6,325 bases of DNA from Zygophlyctis sp. KS116 (Eukaryota; Fungi; Chytridiomycota), in assembly GCA_054661495.1 (NCBI GenBank), contig BAAFSQ010000445.1, positions 1 through 6,325 of the forward strand, given 5' to 3'. The notes beneath the pieces were generated by a model. The model saw nothing but the letters and a program-made list of their open reading frames with translations. It was not told the origin of the DNA and ran no database searches. Of this stretch, positions 1-6,325 are shown piece by piece. The position numbers and the translations under genes were made by a program. How positions within the stretch are numbered: the first letter of the stretch is position 1; every line of letters starts with the position of its first letter.

Positions 1-144
1 ATTGGTATGAAAGGTAATCTGGTAGGACTTCGTGCTCCAGTTGATGGAGCTCTGGCTCCTCCTGGAAATTGGATGCTATTTATTCTGACCGACGGAACTC
101 CTTCAATCGCCAAAGTCATCAATTTACAATCTGGTGATCAAACA
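1..144 (+). repeat. Direct repeat copy 1 (paralogous oxidase 3' region; copy 2 is at 2000-2143)
   Basis: Manual alignment at offset 1999 shows only 3 mismatches (positions 78, 99 and 106). Confidence 0.97.
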
Positions 145-234
145 GATTTTACTCTGGATTTGATTTCGGGATCTTCAAAAATGTCTTTCCCCCTTATTTT
201 AGGAATAATGGCTGTTGGATATTTGATCGTATAA
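1..234 (+). CDS. 3' end (partial) of an upstream glyoxal oxidase-like copper radical oxidase paralog, ending in a hydrophobic GPI-signal/TM-like tail
   Basis: The frame is open from base 1 (ATT GGT ATG AAA) to TAA at 232-234. IGMKGNLVGLRAPVDGALAPPGNWMLFILTDGTPSIAKVI matches the APPGxYMLF motif of the C-terminal Ig-like domain of AA5 oxidases. Bases 1-144 are 141/144 identical to 2000-2143. The protein ends in the hydrophobic stretch FPLILGIMAVGYLIV. Confidence 0.88.
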   Translation: MGMKGNLVGLRAPVDGALAPPGNWMLFILTDGTPSIAKVINLQSGDQTDFTLDLISGSSKMSFPLILGIMAVGYLIV

Positions 235-439: not shown

Positions 440-2260
440 ATGACTTCATTAGGCTATTGGGACATTATTGGATCATCAGGAGCAGTATGCATTCATACAT
501 TCCAGCTTCCTGATGATCGACTTCTTTGTGTTGAACGACCTCATGAACGACCTGTAAATAGAAATAATTCTGATCATATAGTACCCTCAAAACATCAATA
601 CAAATGGTATTCCAGCAACCGAAATCAGGCTAAAAAATGATGCAGGGGAATGGAAAGCCTCATTTCAACCTGTTCCAATGGCTTCAAACGCATTCTGTTC
701 AGGGCATGCAATGTTGGGCAATGGGTCAATATTGAATGTGGGAGGTGATGCAAGAATCGATACTGGATTACAAGATGGAAGAAATAATATCAGAATTTAC
801 AATCCATGCCAGTCTGGTACTTGTTCTAATCCAAAGGGAGAGTTTTCTGAAGTTTATCAGATGTCTACCCAAAGATGGTATCCTACAATTGTGACTCTGG
901 CAGATGGAAGGTATTTTTTGGTTTTCTGAGTATAAGCGCTATGATCATATCAGGATCAACAGACAACTTAGATTTCTCCATGCTCGATCGTCCAATCCAA
1001 AACCCGACGTATGAATATTATCCTCCAAAGTCCACTGGAGTATGGCCTCAAACTCTTGAAATATTGCAGTGGGCCTGGCCTTTTGATCTGTATCCAATGG
1101 CTTTCCAAATGCCATCTGGAAACATTTTCCTGTTTGTCTCTAACAAGTCGATCATTATCAATCCGAAAACTGATCAAATATACAGCACTGTTCCTGATTT
1201 GGTGGTAGATAAGCACCATCCATTCATCTATCCTTATACGCCTAACATGGTATTGCTTCCTCTTACTAAGAAAAACAATTATAAAGCAACTGTTTTGATT
1301 TGTGGTGGAAGCGACAAGGGAGTGAATGATGCGCCTGTAAGCTCTCAGCAATGCTATAAGATTTCACCAGAGGATCCTTCCTCTAAATGGGAACGGCAAG
1401 ACGATATGCCCGTCGGACGTGTTATGCCCGATAGTATTATATTACCAGGTAAGACTTACTCGTAGCTAAAAAATTAAGACGGTAAAGTTTTATTTGTCAA
1501 TGGGGCAGGTTGGGGACTTGCTGGTGGACAGGGCGGTGATGCACAAAATGCTGGTAATCCAGTGTTTGAAACATCCCTATATGATCCAGAGGCACCAACC
1601 GGCCAAAAATGGTCGAGCCTACCAAAATCATCTGTTCCACGTTTATATCATTCAGGTGTCATTCTGACTCCTGATGGTTTCGTTGTTACTACAGGGTCTG
1701 AAATGAGCAATTATGTTGATTTGGCGGGACCGAATGCAAATCCTGACTGCTTTCCTAATGGGGCCAGAAGAGTCTGTACGGATCCTTACGAATATAGGAT
1801 CGAGAGATATACTCCATATTATCTAACAAACGGCAAAGAAAGACCTGTTATCATCAATGCACCGACAAAGTTAACTTACAATTCATCATTTTTGATTGAA
1901 GTTCCAAAAGGAACCAAAATCTCAAAGGCTTCATTTATTCGCTTTTCTACTACAACCCATTCCACAAATACTGACCAGAGATTTGTGGAGTTGGAAATTA
2001 TTGGTATGAAAGGTAATCTGGTAGGACTTCGTGCTCCAGTTGATGGAGCTCTGGCTCCTCCTGGAAATTGGATGCTTTTTATTCTGACCGACGGAACCCC
2101 TTCAGTCGCCAAAGTCATCAATTTACAATCTGGTGATCAAACAAAAATTGATGAAACTGAATTCAGATTACCGACTGACTTAACCAAAAATGGCCGGGCA
2201 TTCTCAACGAAAATTGCAATCTGGCCAACTATTTTAGCGATTATATTCATTTTTTGTTAA
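440..2260 (+). CDS. Glyoxal oxidase-like copper radical oxidase (CAZy AA5, probably AA5_1). Exons 440-553, 582-910, 937-1448, 1479-2260; 578 aa (599 aa if the in-frame ATG at 377 is used)
   Basis: Three GT-AG introns join four ORF-track fragments into one frame (junctions ERP|YPQN, ADG-S-AMII, LP-D-GKVL). Active-site motifs are present: NAFCSGH (Cys, 696-698), RWYPT (Tyr, 879-881), RLYHS (Tyr-His, 1646-1651) and THS (His, 1958-1960). These correspond to the Cys-Tyr cofactor and Cu ligands of galactose/glyoxal oxidases. The C-terminus IAIWPTILAIIFIFC is hydrophobic. The start codon is uncertain. Confidence 0.92.
554..581 (+). other. Spliceosomal intron, 28 nt, phase 0
   Basis: GTAAAT...CTGATCATATAG. 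Removal joins ORF 332..640 to the frame of ORF 678..929. Confidence 0.9.
911..936 (+). other. Spliceosomal intron, 26 nt, phase 2
   Basis: GTATTT...CTGAGTATAAG. Removal gives the kelch-like motif TLADGSAMIISG. Confidence 0.9.
1449..1478 (+). other. Spliceosomal intron, 30 nt, phase 1, contains an in-frame TAG
   Basis: GTAAGA...GCTAAAAAATTAAG. Removal gives the conserved ILPDGKVLFVNGA. Confidence 0.92.
2000..2143 (+). repeat. Direct repeat copy 2 (matches 1-144; the shared region probably extends further 5', beyond the window edge)
   Basis: 141/144 identity to 1-144. Similarity stops abruptly after GATCAAACA. Confidence 0.97.
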
Positions 2261-2296
2261 ATTTAAAGTATTGGCTATTGTGCACTTTAGAATATT

Positions 2297-3210
2297 TTAA
2301 ATTGGGGAAAACCCATATAACCATCGTAGATTCTCTAACACCAGAAAGGTAACAATCGTATGGGGTCCTATCCTAAGCCATTGAGGTAACCACCCTCTAT
2401 ATAATCCTGCGACTCCTTCAGACTGGAATGTTTTTGCAAAACAGTCTAAAGTTGATGAATAAAGCATCCCAACACCGTTTGAATTTACGCCCTGATTCAT
2501 AAATCTTGATTTGACTACATCGATTGGCGACGTAGTTGTAGCTGAAATTAAACCCGAAATCATTGCGCATATACAATGGGTTAAAGTATCTTCCTTAAAA
2601 TACCCTGTCGACAATACGATTCTTTTTGATTGGTCATAAGCTGGCAACTGACTTCCAGTGAGAACTACTGCCCTTTGAATATTTGGTCCGACACCTCTAT
2701 ATAATCCCTTCCATCCGTGACTTGCTATTATAGATTTAAATGCAGTGTATAGCTTTACTGAAGTTGCAGAATTCGCTTGTGACCGAACCTTTATCAAGTC
2801 TGCAGGATTAGCTATTGCTGCGCCGATTCCTTATGTAAAATTAAGAATATCATACCTCCTGCTGAGCCTCCAGCGACTATTTTCTCAAATAACCCCACAG
2901 AGTCTTGTCCGTTTTGTAATAATTTCTTTATCGGTTCGTAAAGTCCCATCCTTATAGTTGAATATGATGCTTCTCTGAACAAAGATGCAGAAAGTCCTTT
3001 ATACAAACCTCTTATTCCTTCATTAGATATAATTCTCCATGATCCCTTTAACAGTCCCTGATATAGTAAACCAGACTTTGCCAATTCTCCCTGTAACTGT
3101 AGCCTCACTTTTATTGTGTCCATCGGATGAGTCACTATATATTAAACAATTGTCTTTCCTGTTGCGGCAATCATACAGCTCAAACCACCAAAAATATATG
3201 ATTCAATCAT
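2297..3210 (-). CDS. Mitochondrial carrier family (SLC25) protein of the UCP/dicarboxylate/oxoglutarate-carrier clade (ucpB-like). Exons 3210-3159, 3134-2856, 2829-2297; 287 aa
   Basis: Three Px[DE]xx[KR] signatures: PMDTIKVR, PADLIKVR, PIDVVKSR. Clade-typical motifs: EGIRGLYKGLSASLFREASYSTIRMGLYE, GVGPNIQRA, WLRIGPHTIVTF. The N-terminal exon reads MIESYIFGGLSCMIAAT and is preceded directly by an in-frame TGA. Substrate cannot be assigned from sequence alone. Confidence 0.92.
2830..2855 (-). other. Spliceosomal intron, 26 nt, phase 1
   Basis: GTATGA...TTTTACATAAG. Removal gives AGGSAGGIGAAIANPADLIKVR. Confidence 0.93.
3135..3158 (-). other. Probable non-canonical GA-AG intron, 24 nt, phase 1, contains an in-frame TAA
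   Basis: ACAG|GAAAGACAATTGTTTAATATATAG|TGACT. Removal gives GGLSCMIAATVTHPMD, which has the normal carrier helix-1 spacing. Confidence 0.72.
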
Positions 3211-3252
3211 TCAAGGATTACGTGTTAAAAATCACAACTCCATTTATGATTG

Positions 3253-3751
3253 CTAACTATTTGAATGTGCTTCCAATGCTCTTGCTACACCTCCTGCTCT
3301 AATAGACTCTGTAGAATCTAAAATCTCAAATGATTCTATACCTTTATGGATGTGTCCGATATTCTCTGATGGCTTCTTTGGAGCATCAAGCGCTTGCTTT
3401 ACAGAGATTGCATCTAAACTCAAGCTAACAGAATCTAATGATCCAATAACAGTCTTATGTAAGCCTTCACAAGTTTTTTTTGGGGAATCTATGATTAGCA
3501 ATACCTAAATTACTCAAGGCCGCAACCAAATGTATTGAATCTGTAATCGCTGTCGCAGATGGTTTTGGAACATGCTTAAAACAATACAGCAATCCATTTT
3601 CAATTTCAAAGTTTTTCAAATTTAATGTGAGAACACAGCCTGGTTCAATGCACTTGAAACATGATTTATGGAAGAATAGATGATTGGTTTCAATCTTTGC
3701 ATCTGCAGAATAAACAGCTTTGGAGCATTTAGAACAAGTGAAACTACTCAT
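3253..3751 (-). CDS. Small single-LIM-domain protein (LASP/hillarin-like N-terminus) with two short C-terminal repeats. Exons 3751-3514, 3488-3253; 157 aa
   Basis: Zinc ligands CSKC...HKSCFKC-x4-C...YCFKH form a LIM double zinc finger. One GT-AG intron joins the two ORF-track pieces (AAL-N-SPKK). Confidence 0.88.
3489..3513 (-). other. Spliceosomal intron, 25 nt, phase 1
   Basis: GTAATT...GCTAATCATAG, with a good CTRAY branch motif. Confidence 0.92.
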
Positions 3752-3836
3752 TGATCTTTTGTTTGTTTATGTTTAATATTCGGACACGTTCACTAGGACA
3801 CAATAACAGTTCTGAAGCTTCTGAAGCTTACTTAAA
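3752..3836. promoter_or_regulatory. 85-nt divergent (putative bidirectional) promoter region between the LIM and CBS genes
   Basis: Head-to-head ATGs at 3751(-) and 3837(+). Contains GGACAC twice (3782, 3796) and a tandem TTCTGAAGC repeat (3810-3829). Confidence 0.55.
3810..3829 (+). repeat. 9-bp tandem repeat (TTCTGAAGC x2.2)
   Basis: TTCTGAAGC TTCTGAAGC TT, read directly from the sequence. Confidence 0.85.
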
Positions 3837-4950
3837 ATGATTAAACTTTCTGATTCAGATGCCAAACAATTGGAAATTGAACTCTTTAGAAAGCCAATTC
3901 AATCTCTTATAAACGATCGGACATCTAGTACTCTTACAGAGTATATTAGATCTCGGTAATGCAAAAAATATAACGATTAGAATGCGTGAATCTAAATTGG
4001 GCCCATCTCTGATAACTGTAAAGGATACAGATACAGTTAGTACTGCATTCGCATTGATAAAAAAATCGAAGATTCAGTCTTTGCCAGTCTTAAATGCCCA
4101 GGATTCTTCACTGATTGGGTTAGTCTCAATTATGGATATCTTGTCCGAAACTATTCTGAGCCCATCTTTTGATGATTTTGAGATATGGACCCAAAGAGAA
4201 AATCTTTACATAGATGAATGGAATAAGATGCACTCTGAAATGTTTAGCAAAATTCTTATCAAGACCGTGCTTGATAAAAAGAACAAGGAATTTAGAATAT
4301 TTCATTCTGATGAATCAATTCAATCAATGTTGGAATTCATGTTTAAAAATCATGAGCATAGAGTCATTGTAGTGGATAAGGCTAGAATGAATGATTTACG
4401 GTATACTACTATTATTAGTCAGACCGATCTCTTGTATTATTTTTTTCTAAATCAAAAATCAATTCCTCAGACTGTTTTATCTTTCAAGGCTGCAGATTTG
4501 ATGCAATTGGCAATGCCTGCAATTTTAAAAGATTGTTCAATTGATATGGATCATGTAACTCAAAAAGCTCCAATCATTGCTCCTTGTGATACACCGACCT
4601 TGATTGCTTTACGTGTAATGAAGCTCTATCATGTATCAAGTGTGGGTATAGTTGATCCAGATGGTGCATTAGTAGGAAACTTGAGCCCGAATGATTTTAG
4701 AGGCTATGATTTTCAGGATTTGTCTTGTCTTGTTCATCCTGTTTTAACTTTTATAAAGCTTCAGCATCAGGAGGATCCACGTATGTGGAGTATAAGTTGC
4801 ACAAAGGATGATCAGCTCATGATTCTTATTCATAGAATGCTGAGAGCTAAAGTACATAGAATATGGGTTTGTGATGAGTTACTTCATCCTTTGGGAGTCG
4901 TAACGATGACAGACATTCTAACTGCCTTGACTCAAATAAAAAATGATTAG
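3837..4950 (+). CDS. CBS-domain protein (about four CBS motifs; SNF4/AMPK-gamma/Sds23-like). Exons 3837-3955, 3981-4950; 362 aa
   Basis: CBS-type motifs: KIQSLPVL...LIGLVSIMDIL, HRVIVVD...IISQTDLL, VSSVGIVD..GALVGNLSPNDF, VHRIWVCD...PLGVVTMTDIL. An upstream exon (AAAATG; MIKLSDSDAKQLEIELFRKPIQSLI...) joins in frame through a 25-nt intron. Confidence 0.88.
3956..3980 (+). other. Spliceosomal intron, 25 nt, phase 2
   Basis: GTAATG...TATAACGATTAG. Removal links the open upstream exon to ORF 3982..4950. Confidence 0.85.
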
Positions 4951-4995
4951 CTTCTGCATTTGTATATTTTATTTCTAGCTTGTAATCCTATAAAT

Positions 4996-5791
4996 TCATA
5001 ATGTCTTTTCATAAATCCCATTATAAGATTTCAACAGCTGCACGATTTGTGACTGTAAACGTGAAATTATTTTGACCAAAATCTCTTTCAGTCTAAAATA
5101 ATTTAAATCTTGAAACTTACAAGGTTACATCTTGAGATTGTGCTGCTCCAAGAAGACCGCCATGAAAATGTGAATAAGAATCATCCAGGTTTTGTAAAAT
5201 AGAATCTAAATTCCCTAATTCCACTTCAATTTCTTCATTTGAGAGCGTGCCTATAGAAATCAGTAATTTCTTGATCATGGCAACAGCAGAATTTAAAGTT
5301 GTAAAATAACCCAGGCATTGATGATGATCTATTTCCGAGCCAAATGGATCAACCTAAAATTGTTACGATTCAATAGAAACTTACTGGCGAGTTAAAGTGG
5401 GAGGCGCATTTTGGAAACAGATTTGCTAAATTATATTGAAAGAGAAAGTATGATATCGTACAATCCGGAAACGATATCTTTAGACTCGATATTATAATTT
5501 CCACTTGCCGATTGGTCAAATCTTTAAGAGTGCTTAATGACTTGTTCATATTATCTACAGACTCTGCATTTGTAAAGTCAACCATGGATTCGCAGCACAC
5601 GCGCTTAGAAAGAAGAACTTCTAAACAACTTAATTGGCATAGAATATTTGGGATTTTTTTGACTTTTGGATCTGATTGATATCCCCATATTTCTGTTTTA
5701 TATTGGGTAACTCATCATTATTTGCATTGGAAATACCTTTGAAATTTATGTCGCCGGAAGCATCTCTTTTCAATGGAGTCGATCGGATCAT
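4996..5791 (-). CDS. Hypothetical protein, about 236 aa, no recognised family. Exons 5791-5737, 5710-5385, 5353-5121, 5092-4996
   Basis: Three GT-AG introns of 26, 31 and 28 nt give one continuous frame, MIRSTPLKRD...FKVTQYKTEIWG...HFNSPVDPFGSE...QDVTLLKEILVK...YEKTL*. Only part of it appears in the ORF track (5370..5600). The start codon is less certain. Confidence 0.75.
5093..5120 (-). other. Spliceosomal intron, 28 nt, phase 2
   Basis: GTAAGT...TTTAAATTATTTTAG. Perfect donor; removal restores the frame. Confidence 0.85.
5354..5384 (-). other. Spliceosomal intron, 31 nt, phase 0
   Basis: GTAAGT...CGTAACAATTTTAG. Perfect donor; removal restores the frame. Confidence 0.87.
5711..5736 (-). 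other. Spliceosomal intron, 26 nt, phase 1, rare GAG acceptor
   Basis: AAAG|GTATTT...AATAATGATGAG|TT. Joins two open frames, and the downstream frame opens right after the intronic TGA. Confidence 0.72.
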
Positions 5792-5863
5792 TTCGAGGAT
5801 GAAATCTAGTTCCGATGTTGATGTCGATTGATCTTAAAAAACAATATTGGAATTGAAATTCAT

Positions 5864-6325
5864 TTATTCATAAATTTCAAAATCTCTGGACAATCTTAAA
5901 TTCTTCCACACAAGGCATACAAATCAATAATTTGATTTTTGACGACATCCATTGCAGCCAATTTAGCCTGTTCCTTTACAGAATTGTAGATTGGTCCATC
6001 ATACACCTTTCCAGAAATAAAATCTTCAGACAATCGGACAGATTCAGAGTTTTTTCTGCGATAATGACAAATATTTTGGATTATCTCTGCAACTTTGATA
6101 TCCACTGTTCGGTCAAGTTTAATAGCTTGAGCAACAACCATTGGATCAACAGCAACTCCAGAAGCTAAAAGATTCCAAATTTGATCAGTAGATCTTTGTC
6201 CTTTTAACAAACTTAAAACATCATCCACACTATTGGCAGCTCTTAAACTTTCTAACCGATCCAACAAAAGTCCATGAAGAATCTTTTCAGATTGAGCAGT
6301 TGGTTGTTGATAAAGAGGCAACCCA
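5864..6325 (-). CDS. 3' part (partial) of a hypothetical, probably alpha-helical protein. Exons >6325-5921, 5894-5864
   Basis: The frame is open to the window edge (ORF 5896..6321). A 26-nt GT-AG intron gives the ending NQIIDLLSRDFEIYE*. If unspliced, the CDS would stop at 5896. No family recognised. Confidence 0.7.
5895..5920 (-). other. Probable spliceosomal intron, 26 nt, phase 2
   Basis: GTATGC...GAATTTAAG. The size matches the modal length in this window, the branch motif is weak, and homology does not force it. Confidence 0.6.

Follow-up and report, generated by a model that had tools for sequence, protein, structure and literature searches.

Few signals of eukaryotic gene expression vary as little as the GU of the 5′ splice site, and a gene whose coding sequence appears to continue across a donor reading GA raises the question of whether such an intron is removed at all, or whether the gene, its model or its sequence is at fault. 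A gene of this kind lies on the minus strand of the window analysed here, a stretch of 6,325 nucleotides from Zygophlyctis sp. KS116 that makes up the whole of contig C445 in the 12.7-Mb, 1175-contig assembly (G000) of this compact genome. It encodes a mitochondrial carrier and is flanked by a LIM-domain gene on one side and a glyoxal-oxidase gene on the other. The initial annotation, made from the letters of the window alone, had noted that exon 1 meets an in-frame TAA and had proposed that a short interval bounded by GA and AG is spliced out. All that it described is present in the sequence, and every test that we ran, whether on independent assemblies, on orthologues or on an outgroup, favours the proposal: judged from the sequences, the interval (3158–3135, minus strand) is very probably a genuine intron of the major spliceosome (U2-type) with a GA 5′ end, which would be removed from the mRNA.

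Table 1. Exons, introns and splicing elements of the carrier gene, in window coordinates.
Feature	Position	Strand	Description
Exon 1	3159..3210	-	52 nt; ATG 3210-3208; 17 codons (MIESYIFGGLSCMIAAT) plus G, which begins a Val codon; last bases CAG
Intron 1, GA..AG (probable)	3135..3158	-	24 nt, phase 1, GAAAGACAATTGTTTAATATATAG (GAAAGAC...ATATAG)
Donor hexamer GAAAGA (+1 to +6)	3153..3158	-	A at +2 is position 3157, T on the + strand
In-frame TAA within intron 1, block to read-through	3142..3144	-	
Branch-site-like TTTAAT (candidate)	3141..3146	-	Distance of putative branch A to the 3′ splice site, 7 nt; read from sequence
Alternative in-frame GT donor GTATGA	3171..3176	-	42-nt intron; judged unused; within conserved Cys-Met-Ile codons
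Exon 2	2856..3134	-	VTHPMDTIKVRLQ ... GGSAGG; matches positions 22-94 of the Pfam Mito_carr profile (E=1.9e-18)
Intron 2	2830..2855	-	Canonical GT-AG, 26 nt, GTATGA...CATAAG; 25-27 nt in all lineages
Exon 3	2297..2829	-	Carrier repeats 2 and 3; TAA stop 2299-2297; Pfam Mito_carr E=6.7e-41, two stretches

By its sequence the gene belongs to the mitochondrial carrier family (SLC25; UCP/SLC25A14-30-like). Its top full-length relatives are all from chytrids (Homolaphlyctis, Cladochytrium, Batrachochytrium and Gorgonomyces), and its homologues carry database names of the SLC25A14/30-like or ucpB-like type. The exons were used separately as search queries, the spliced reading being only translated, and the Pfam family PF00153 (Mito_carr) was matched by exon 2 in one stretch and by exon 3 in two. 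Carrier signatures of the form P-x-[DE]-x-x-[KR] are present in all three repeats (PMDTIKVR, PADLIKVR and PIDVVKSR). The match on exon 2 begins only at position 22 of the profile, so that exon 1 must supply about 20 N-terminal profile positions and, with them, the first half of helix 1.

Exon 2 opens at 3134 with TG ACT CAT CCG ATG GAC, which reads (V)THPMD once the preceding G is supplied by exon 1, and removal of the 24 nt yields FGGLSCMIAATVTHPMDTIKVRLQ; at the second junction, removal of intron 2 restores GGSAGG|IGAAIANPAD. It had been claimed from the window that taking out the GA..AG interval restores the spacing between the GG and the Pro of the first repeat, and the spacing obtained is indeed that of helix 1 in all full-length orthologues, which read FGG(L/I)SCM.AA.VT(H/N)P.D, those derived from transcripts included, and align to the spliced model without a gap. 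A cut one or two nucleotides further upstream (GG..TA or AG..AT) would give an identical mRNA, and the boundaries GA..AG are preferred to these solely by analogy with the consensus.

To follow the intron in other genomes, orthologous loci were retrieved via homologues of exon 3. They fall into four deep lineages, namely the window with the near-identical L001, then L002, L003/L004 and L007/L008 (five loci when L001 is counted separately). L002 has the same gene neighbours as the window, and those of L003 and L004 are different. In all lineages the codon in question carries CAG|GAAAGA...TAG|, with an interval of 24, 28, 28 and 29 nt, respectively. The fuller pattern in L002, L003/L004 and L007/L008 is ...GCAG|GAAAGA...TTAG|(T/G)(T/A/G)AC.CA.CC, and when spliced at GA..AG the lineages read MIES(F/Y)(V/I)FGGLSCM.AA.VTHP.D (MIESFVFGGLSCM.AAAVTHPID). 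Substitutions have accumulated freely inside the intron, while no lineage departs from the donor hexamer GAAAGA or from CAG at the end of the exon; a canonical GT is one transversion (A>T) away, and no lineage has made that change. The positions aligned to the candidate branch site TTTAAT read CTAAT in L002–L004 and CTTAC in L007, at 7–10 nt from the AG, in a genome whose branch consensus is not cleanly definable from the noisy set of intron candidates. At the other end of the gene, exon 3 stays open for 150 codons in L003 and L007 and for 176 in L001, L002 and the window; the difference suggests an additional intron or a shorter C-terminus in L003 and L007.

A scan of JGI metagenomes with the exon-2 alignment found its nearest relative at 61% identity in exon 2, a freshwater sequence (L009) that supplies an outgroup. 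At the same codon and in the same phase this relative has a 33-nt intron with ordinary GT-AG ends (GCGCTGG|GTACTT...ACTTAG|TCACTCACCC; also ACTTAG|TCACTCAC), and by this sequence comparison the GA-AG intron of the carrier is positionally homologous to a canonical GT-AG intron. The site is free of introns in Cladochytrium replicatum and in two further relatives. In the simplest history, the ordinary GT-AG intron at this codon would be ancestral, the T at +2 would have changed to A in an ancestor shared by the GA lineages, which are chytrids with tiny introns, and the GA donor would have been retained since that ancestor without ever reverting. Several other carrier homologues on JGI freshwater contigs (L013–L020) are intronless at this site and have TAA or TAG in frame inside conserved motifs, for instance IRL*IQG, and resemble genes of ciliates that use a reassigned code.

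The least improbable of the alternatives, which the evidence nevertheless rejects, holds that the GT upstream at 3176 is the productive donor, that helix 1 is shortened accordingly and that the GA is never cut. GTATGA is a good donor sequence and the product would be in frame. The initial annotation had described this choice as a 42-nt intron at the price of six residues and had considered it unlikely, and we confirm both the coordinates and the deletion. The six residues that would go from helix 1 are common to all orthologues, and the 18 nt that separate the two donors correspond to the conserved SCM(I/A/T)AA(T/A), with synonymous variation present. The donor itself is not conserved, as L003 and L004 have TGCATG in place of the GT, and introns beginning at this point would measure 42–49 nt, outside the main peak of about 24–31 nt in the candidate set. 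Nor does any other canonical choice do better, since every in-frame GT-AG or GC-AG alternative is 42–58 nt long and costs at least six conserved residues.

Somewhat less probable still is a splice-dead allele or pseudogene, in which the mutation at the donor would have left the gene without function, an alternative that had been raised from the window. A change of GU to GA usually abolishes productive splicing in model systems, which speaks for the idea; the substitution pattern speaks against it. From lineage to lineage pS is 0.49–0.77, which is saturated, and dN/dS is 0.04–0.17, so that the gene is to be regarded as functional in all lineages and the notion of an inactivating allele is refuted. 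The remaining exons and introns are all intact. Seven synonymous and four conservative replacement changes separate exon 1 of the window from that of L003, a pattern which indicates that the exon is translated, and this next to a donor hexamer that does not vary.

An intron of the minor spliceosome (U12-type), or some other non-U2 intron, is very improbable, although non-GT introns frequently belong to that class. The donor GAAAGA is unlike (A/G)TATCCTT, the branch box TCCTTAAC is absent, and the homologous intron of L009 is an ordinary GT-AG intron. A search for the U12 snRNA (RF00007) gave no match in the assembly, a weak negative given that the assembly is fragmented and that the control genomes were all prokaryotes.

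The remaining two explanations have next to no probability. Translation of an unspliced interval by stop-codon read-through or recoding would be conceivable for the window and L001, where the interval is 24 nt long and in frame with a single TAA, but the 28 or 29 nt of L002–L004 and L007–L008 are not multiples of three and would shift the frame into several stops if left unspliced, the eight added residues would break the GG-to-P spacing common to all orthologues, and both TAA and TAG serve as normal stop codons in the window. A sequencing or assembly error, with a real GT whose T was miscalled as A, would be the default assumption for a single assembly because GA-AG introns are very rare, and had been considered as such from the outset, but the independent contigs refute it. 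A Logan contig of run X3 (4153 nt, depth 140), from a sample not flagged as the source, spans 2126–6278 with zero differences, position 3157 included, and in run X4, a third sample, the site is covered at a depth of about 4 with no difference listed. The intron of L001, an ENA scaffold from another sample with a dS of 0.07 to the window, is identical, and GA is present in all of seven independently assembled contigs from six other samples (L001–L004, L007 and L008). The GA donor is real at the DNA level.

At the RNA level, the metatranscriptome runs X19 and X20 cover the glyoxal-oxidase gene and the last gene of the window only, with a depth of zero over 2126–5725, the carrier included. No spliced transcript of a close relative was present in the protein and JGI collections searched, and the public protein collection has close relatives of the carrier and of the N-myristoyltransferase (NMT) discussed below only as ORF fragments.

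At the left edge of the contig, window 1–234 (plus strand) holds the 3′ end of a glyoxal-oxidase gene, a near-repeat of 1996–2260, where the complete gene at 600–2260 terminates, which makes the two genes tandem paralogues. The X3 contig links 2143 back to 326 via 181 other letters, and this suggests that in the X3 assembly the glyoxal-oxidase tandem array has another arrangement or has been collapsed in another way. At 2286–2336 the X4 contig (depth 2.9) has 7 letters (AATATTT) in place of 49 nt; the stretch replaced consists of intergenic spacer and the last 13 codons of the carrier plus its stop, and the replacement may stem from a variant strain or else from a relative placed at 90% likeness.

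How a GA donor might be recognised can be considered from the snRNAs of the genome. Two copies of U1 were found, in tandem on contig C548 and both with the canonical 5′ end ACUUACCU, and U6 has the canonical ACAGAGA and AGC. Among these U1 copies and the U6 found, which are the best-scoring candidates only, there is no compensating variant, and the suggestion that variant U1 or U6 snRNAs might be responsible is thus unsupported. The two U1 genes (L061; 191–348 and 523–680, minus strand) are identical, lie about 330 nt apart and share their upstream sequence; in the U1 5′ region, U stands at position 11 in place of the usual G (ACUUACCUU), by which the usual pair with C at donor position -3 is lost. 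Against the U1 5′ end GCACUUACCU, CAG|GAAAGA pairs at -2, -1, +1, +3, +4 and +5, leaving the donor unpaired at +2, an A.A mismatch, and at +6.

Both the splicing of the GA intron and the mechanism of its compensation we infer from these sequences. The donor may work since everything else about it is optimal, with AG at the end of the exon, G at +1 and AAG at +3 to +5, so that six Watson-Crick pairs with U1 would form, and the AAGA would be able to pair also with the ACAGAGA region of U6. In addition, within an intron of 24–29 nt the branch site and the sole nearby AG would leave the spliceosome almost no other partner. In yeast and mammalian extracts a change of GU to GA at the 5′ splice site stalls the second step of splicing, and efficient use of the donor here would consequently need some tolerance. 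Prp8 suppressors of the U2A mutant of the 5′ splice site have been reported (PMC11651659).

Three further genes of the same genome, encoding GDI, NMT and BUD32, have candidate introns of the same kind, and all three hold on inspection of the sequence. For GDI, the gene begins aaaaATG|GAAAGTTTGATTTTGTTAATTTAATAG|GATGAAGTA with the donor ATG|GAAAGT and an intron of 27 nt; TAA and TAG stand in frame directly before exon 2, on which the GDI profile begins at position 2. The intron of NMT (CTTAAATG|GAAAGTTTAG...TTTTATAG|GGCATTAGAACC) is 31 nt long and has the donor ATG|GAAAGT. That of BUD32 (GAG|GAAAGTTTATTTAGTTTAATTCCTAG|TTTTTTGAT) is 26 nt long, with the donor GAG|GAAAGT; its exons lie in different frames, which requires an intron length of 3n+2, and no GT donor gives such a length.

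The NMT gene allows the two kinds of donor to be seen side by side. Tandem NMT paralogues occupy about 200–760 and 1375–2186 on the minus strand of L087 (contig C125 of the assembly) and both have an intron at the same place, in the FLKW|AL codon, one with GT and the other with GA; in the GT copy the same Trp codon is interrupted by TG|GTAATT...CAAAG|G, with 25 nt. A relative at 80% identity (L089) reads GAAAGTTTA and has kept the GAAAGT donor in an intron of 28 nt. Further NMT relatives show W-Y or W-stop following FLKW, so that only TG|GTA... is possible there. In a sister lineage, represented by a Logan contig from SRR29492106 (L090:1255-1270), the GA-AG intron of NMT is precisely absent and the next GT-AG intron is present, which looks like a clean intron loss at the non-canonical site.

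The donors of the carrier, GDI, NMT and BUD32 have G|GAAAG(A/T) in four out of four cases. For comparison, we applied an ORF-bridging screen to a 206-kb sample of the genome, a small and noisy set in which about half of the 'high-confidence' GT introns look spurious; among its GT-AG candidates AAG at +3 to +5 occurs in only 8–10%, and together with G at -1 in 0–4%. Typical donors in this sample are weaker (GTAATT, GTATTT and GTAAAT). The association with G|GAAAG supports the view that GA would be tolerated only where every other donor position is optimal. The screen misses the carrier intron by design, exon 1 being short and a GT alternative being present. Two GA candidates that it returned were rejected: L078:4489-4516 is the end of a gene plus intergenic spacer, and L071:3149-3173 lies inside a continuous ORF. 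With four cases known so far in a 12.7-Mb genome that has several introns per gene, the GA-AG class must be very rare.

A more far-reaching proposal, which we put forward as speculative and on balance unlikely, is that the spliceosome of this clade heritably tolerates A at +2 provided that the donor reads G|GAAAG, and that GA-AG introns form a small but stable class, possibly selected in particular genes as slow-splicing control points and not just tolerated. If this were true, these chytrids would be a natural system for studying the second catalytic step on a 'dead-end' GA substrate.

GA-AG is an already recognised, rare non-canonical combination, and the carrier intron adds a case to it, not a new kind of intron. 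The GA-AG introns surveyed in two species, Eurytemora among them, are like the present ones in their GA and AG ends, in the (A)G upstream and the A downstream of the donor, and in the consensus-like remainder of the donor. In one of the two species they account for 3.2% of RNA-Seq-supported junctions, compared to the four cases known so far here, where the class is very rare, and the present cases come from a fungus whose introns measure about 27 nt and in which single GA introns are conserved across saturated synonymous divergence. The variant U1 suggested for Eurytemora is absent among the chytrid U1 copies found.

A similar example is the human FGFR 'dead-end' GA 5′ splice site (Brackenridge et al. 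2003), whose use reportedly requires a canonical GT located six nucleotides upstream (PMC7072748). Both systems have a GA donor, the major spliceosome and a conserved gene, and in the chytrid productive use is what the sequences point to. The chytrid loci read GCCGCAACAG or GCTGCTGCAG upstream of the GA, and in no lineage is there a GT within 6 nt, so that the mechanism described for FGFR is inapplicable. Introns as short as these are known from Paramecium and Nyctotherus, at about 25 nt (PMC5014332), and from myxozoans (PMC13644364). Like the chytrid introns, they measure about 24–30 nt within narrow limits, and a few helical turns have to accommodate the donor, the branch site and the acceptor, but the reports concern length and not GA donors, and the chytrid is a fungus with the standard genetic code.

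What makes the carrier intron noteworthy is that a GA donor has been kept for so long in housekeeping genes when GU to GA blocks the second step in yeast and mammalian extracts. Here it appears to have been held in a housekeeping gene for long enough to saturate synonymous sites, alongside canonical U1 and U6. For annotation, the practical rule is to permit G|GAAAG donors in these genomes, as the carrier, GDI, NMT and BUD32 genes are otherwise mis-modelled. For research on splicing, these introns would offer a natural test of how a strong donor and an extremely short intron can make up for a 5′ end that is not GU.
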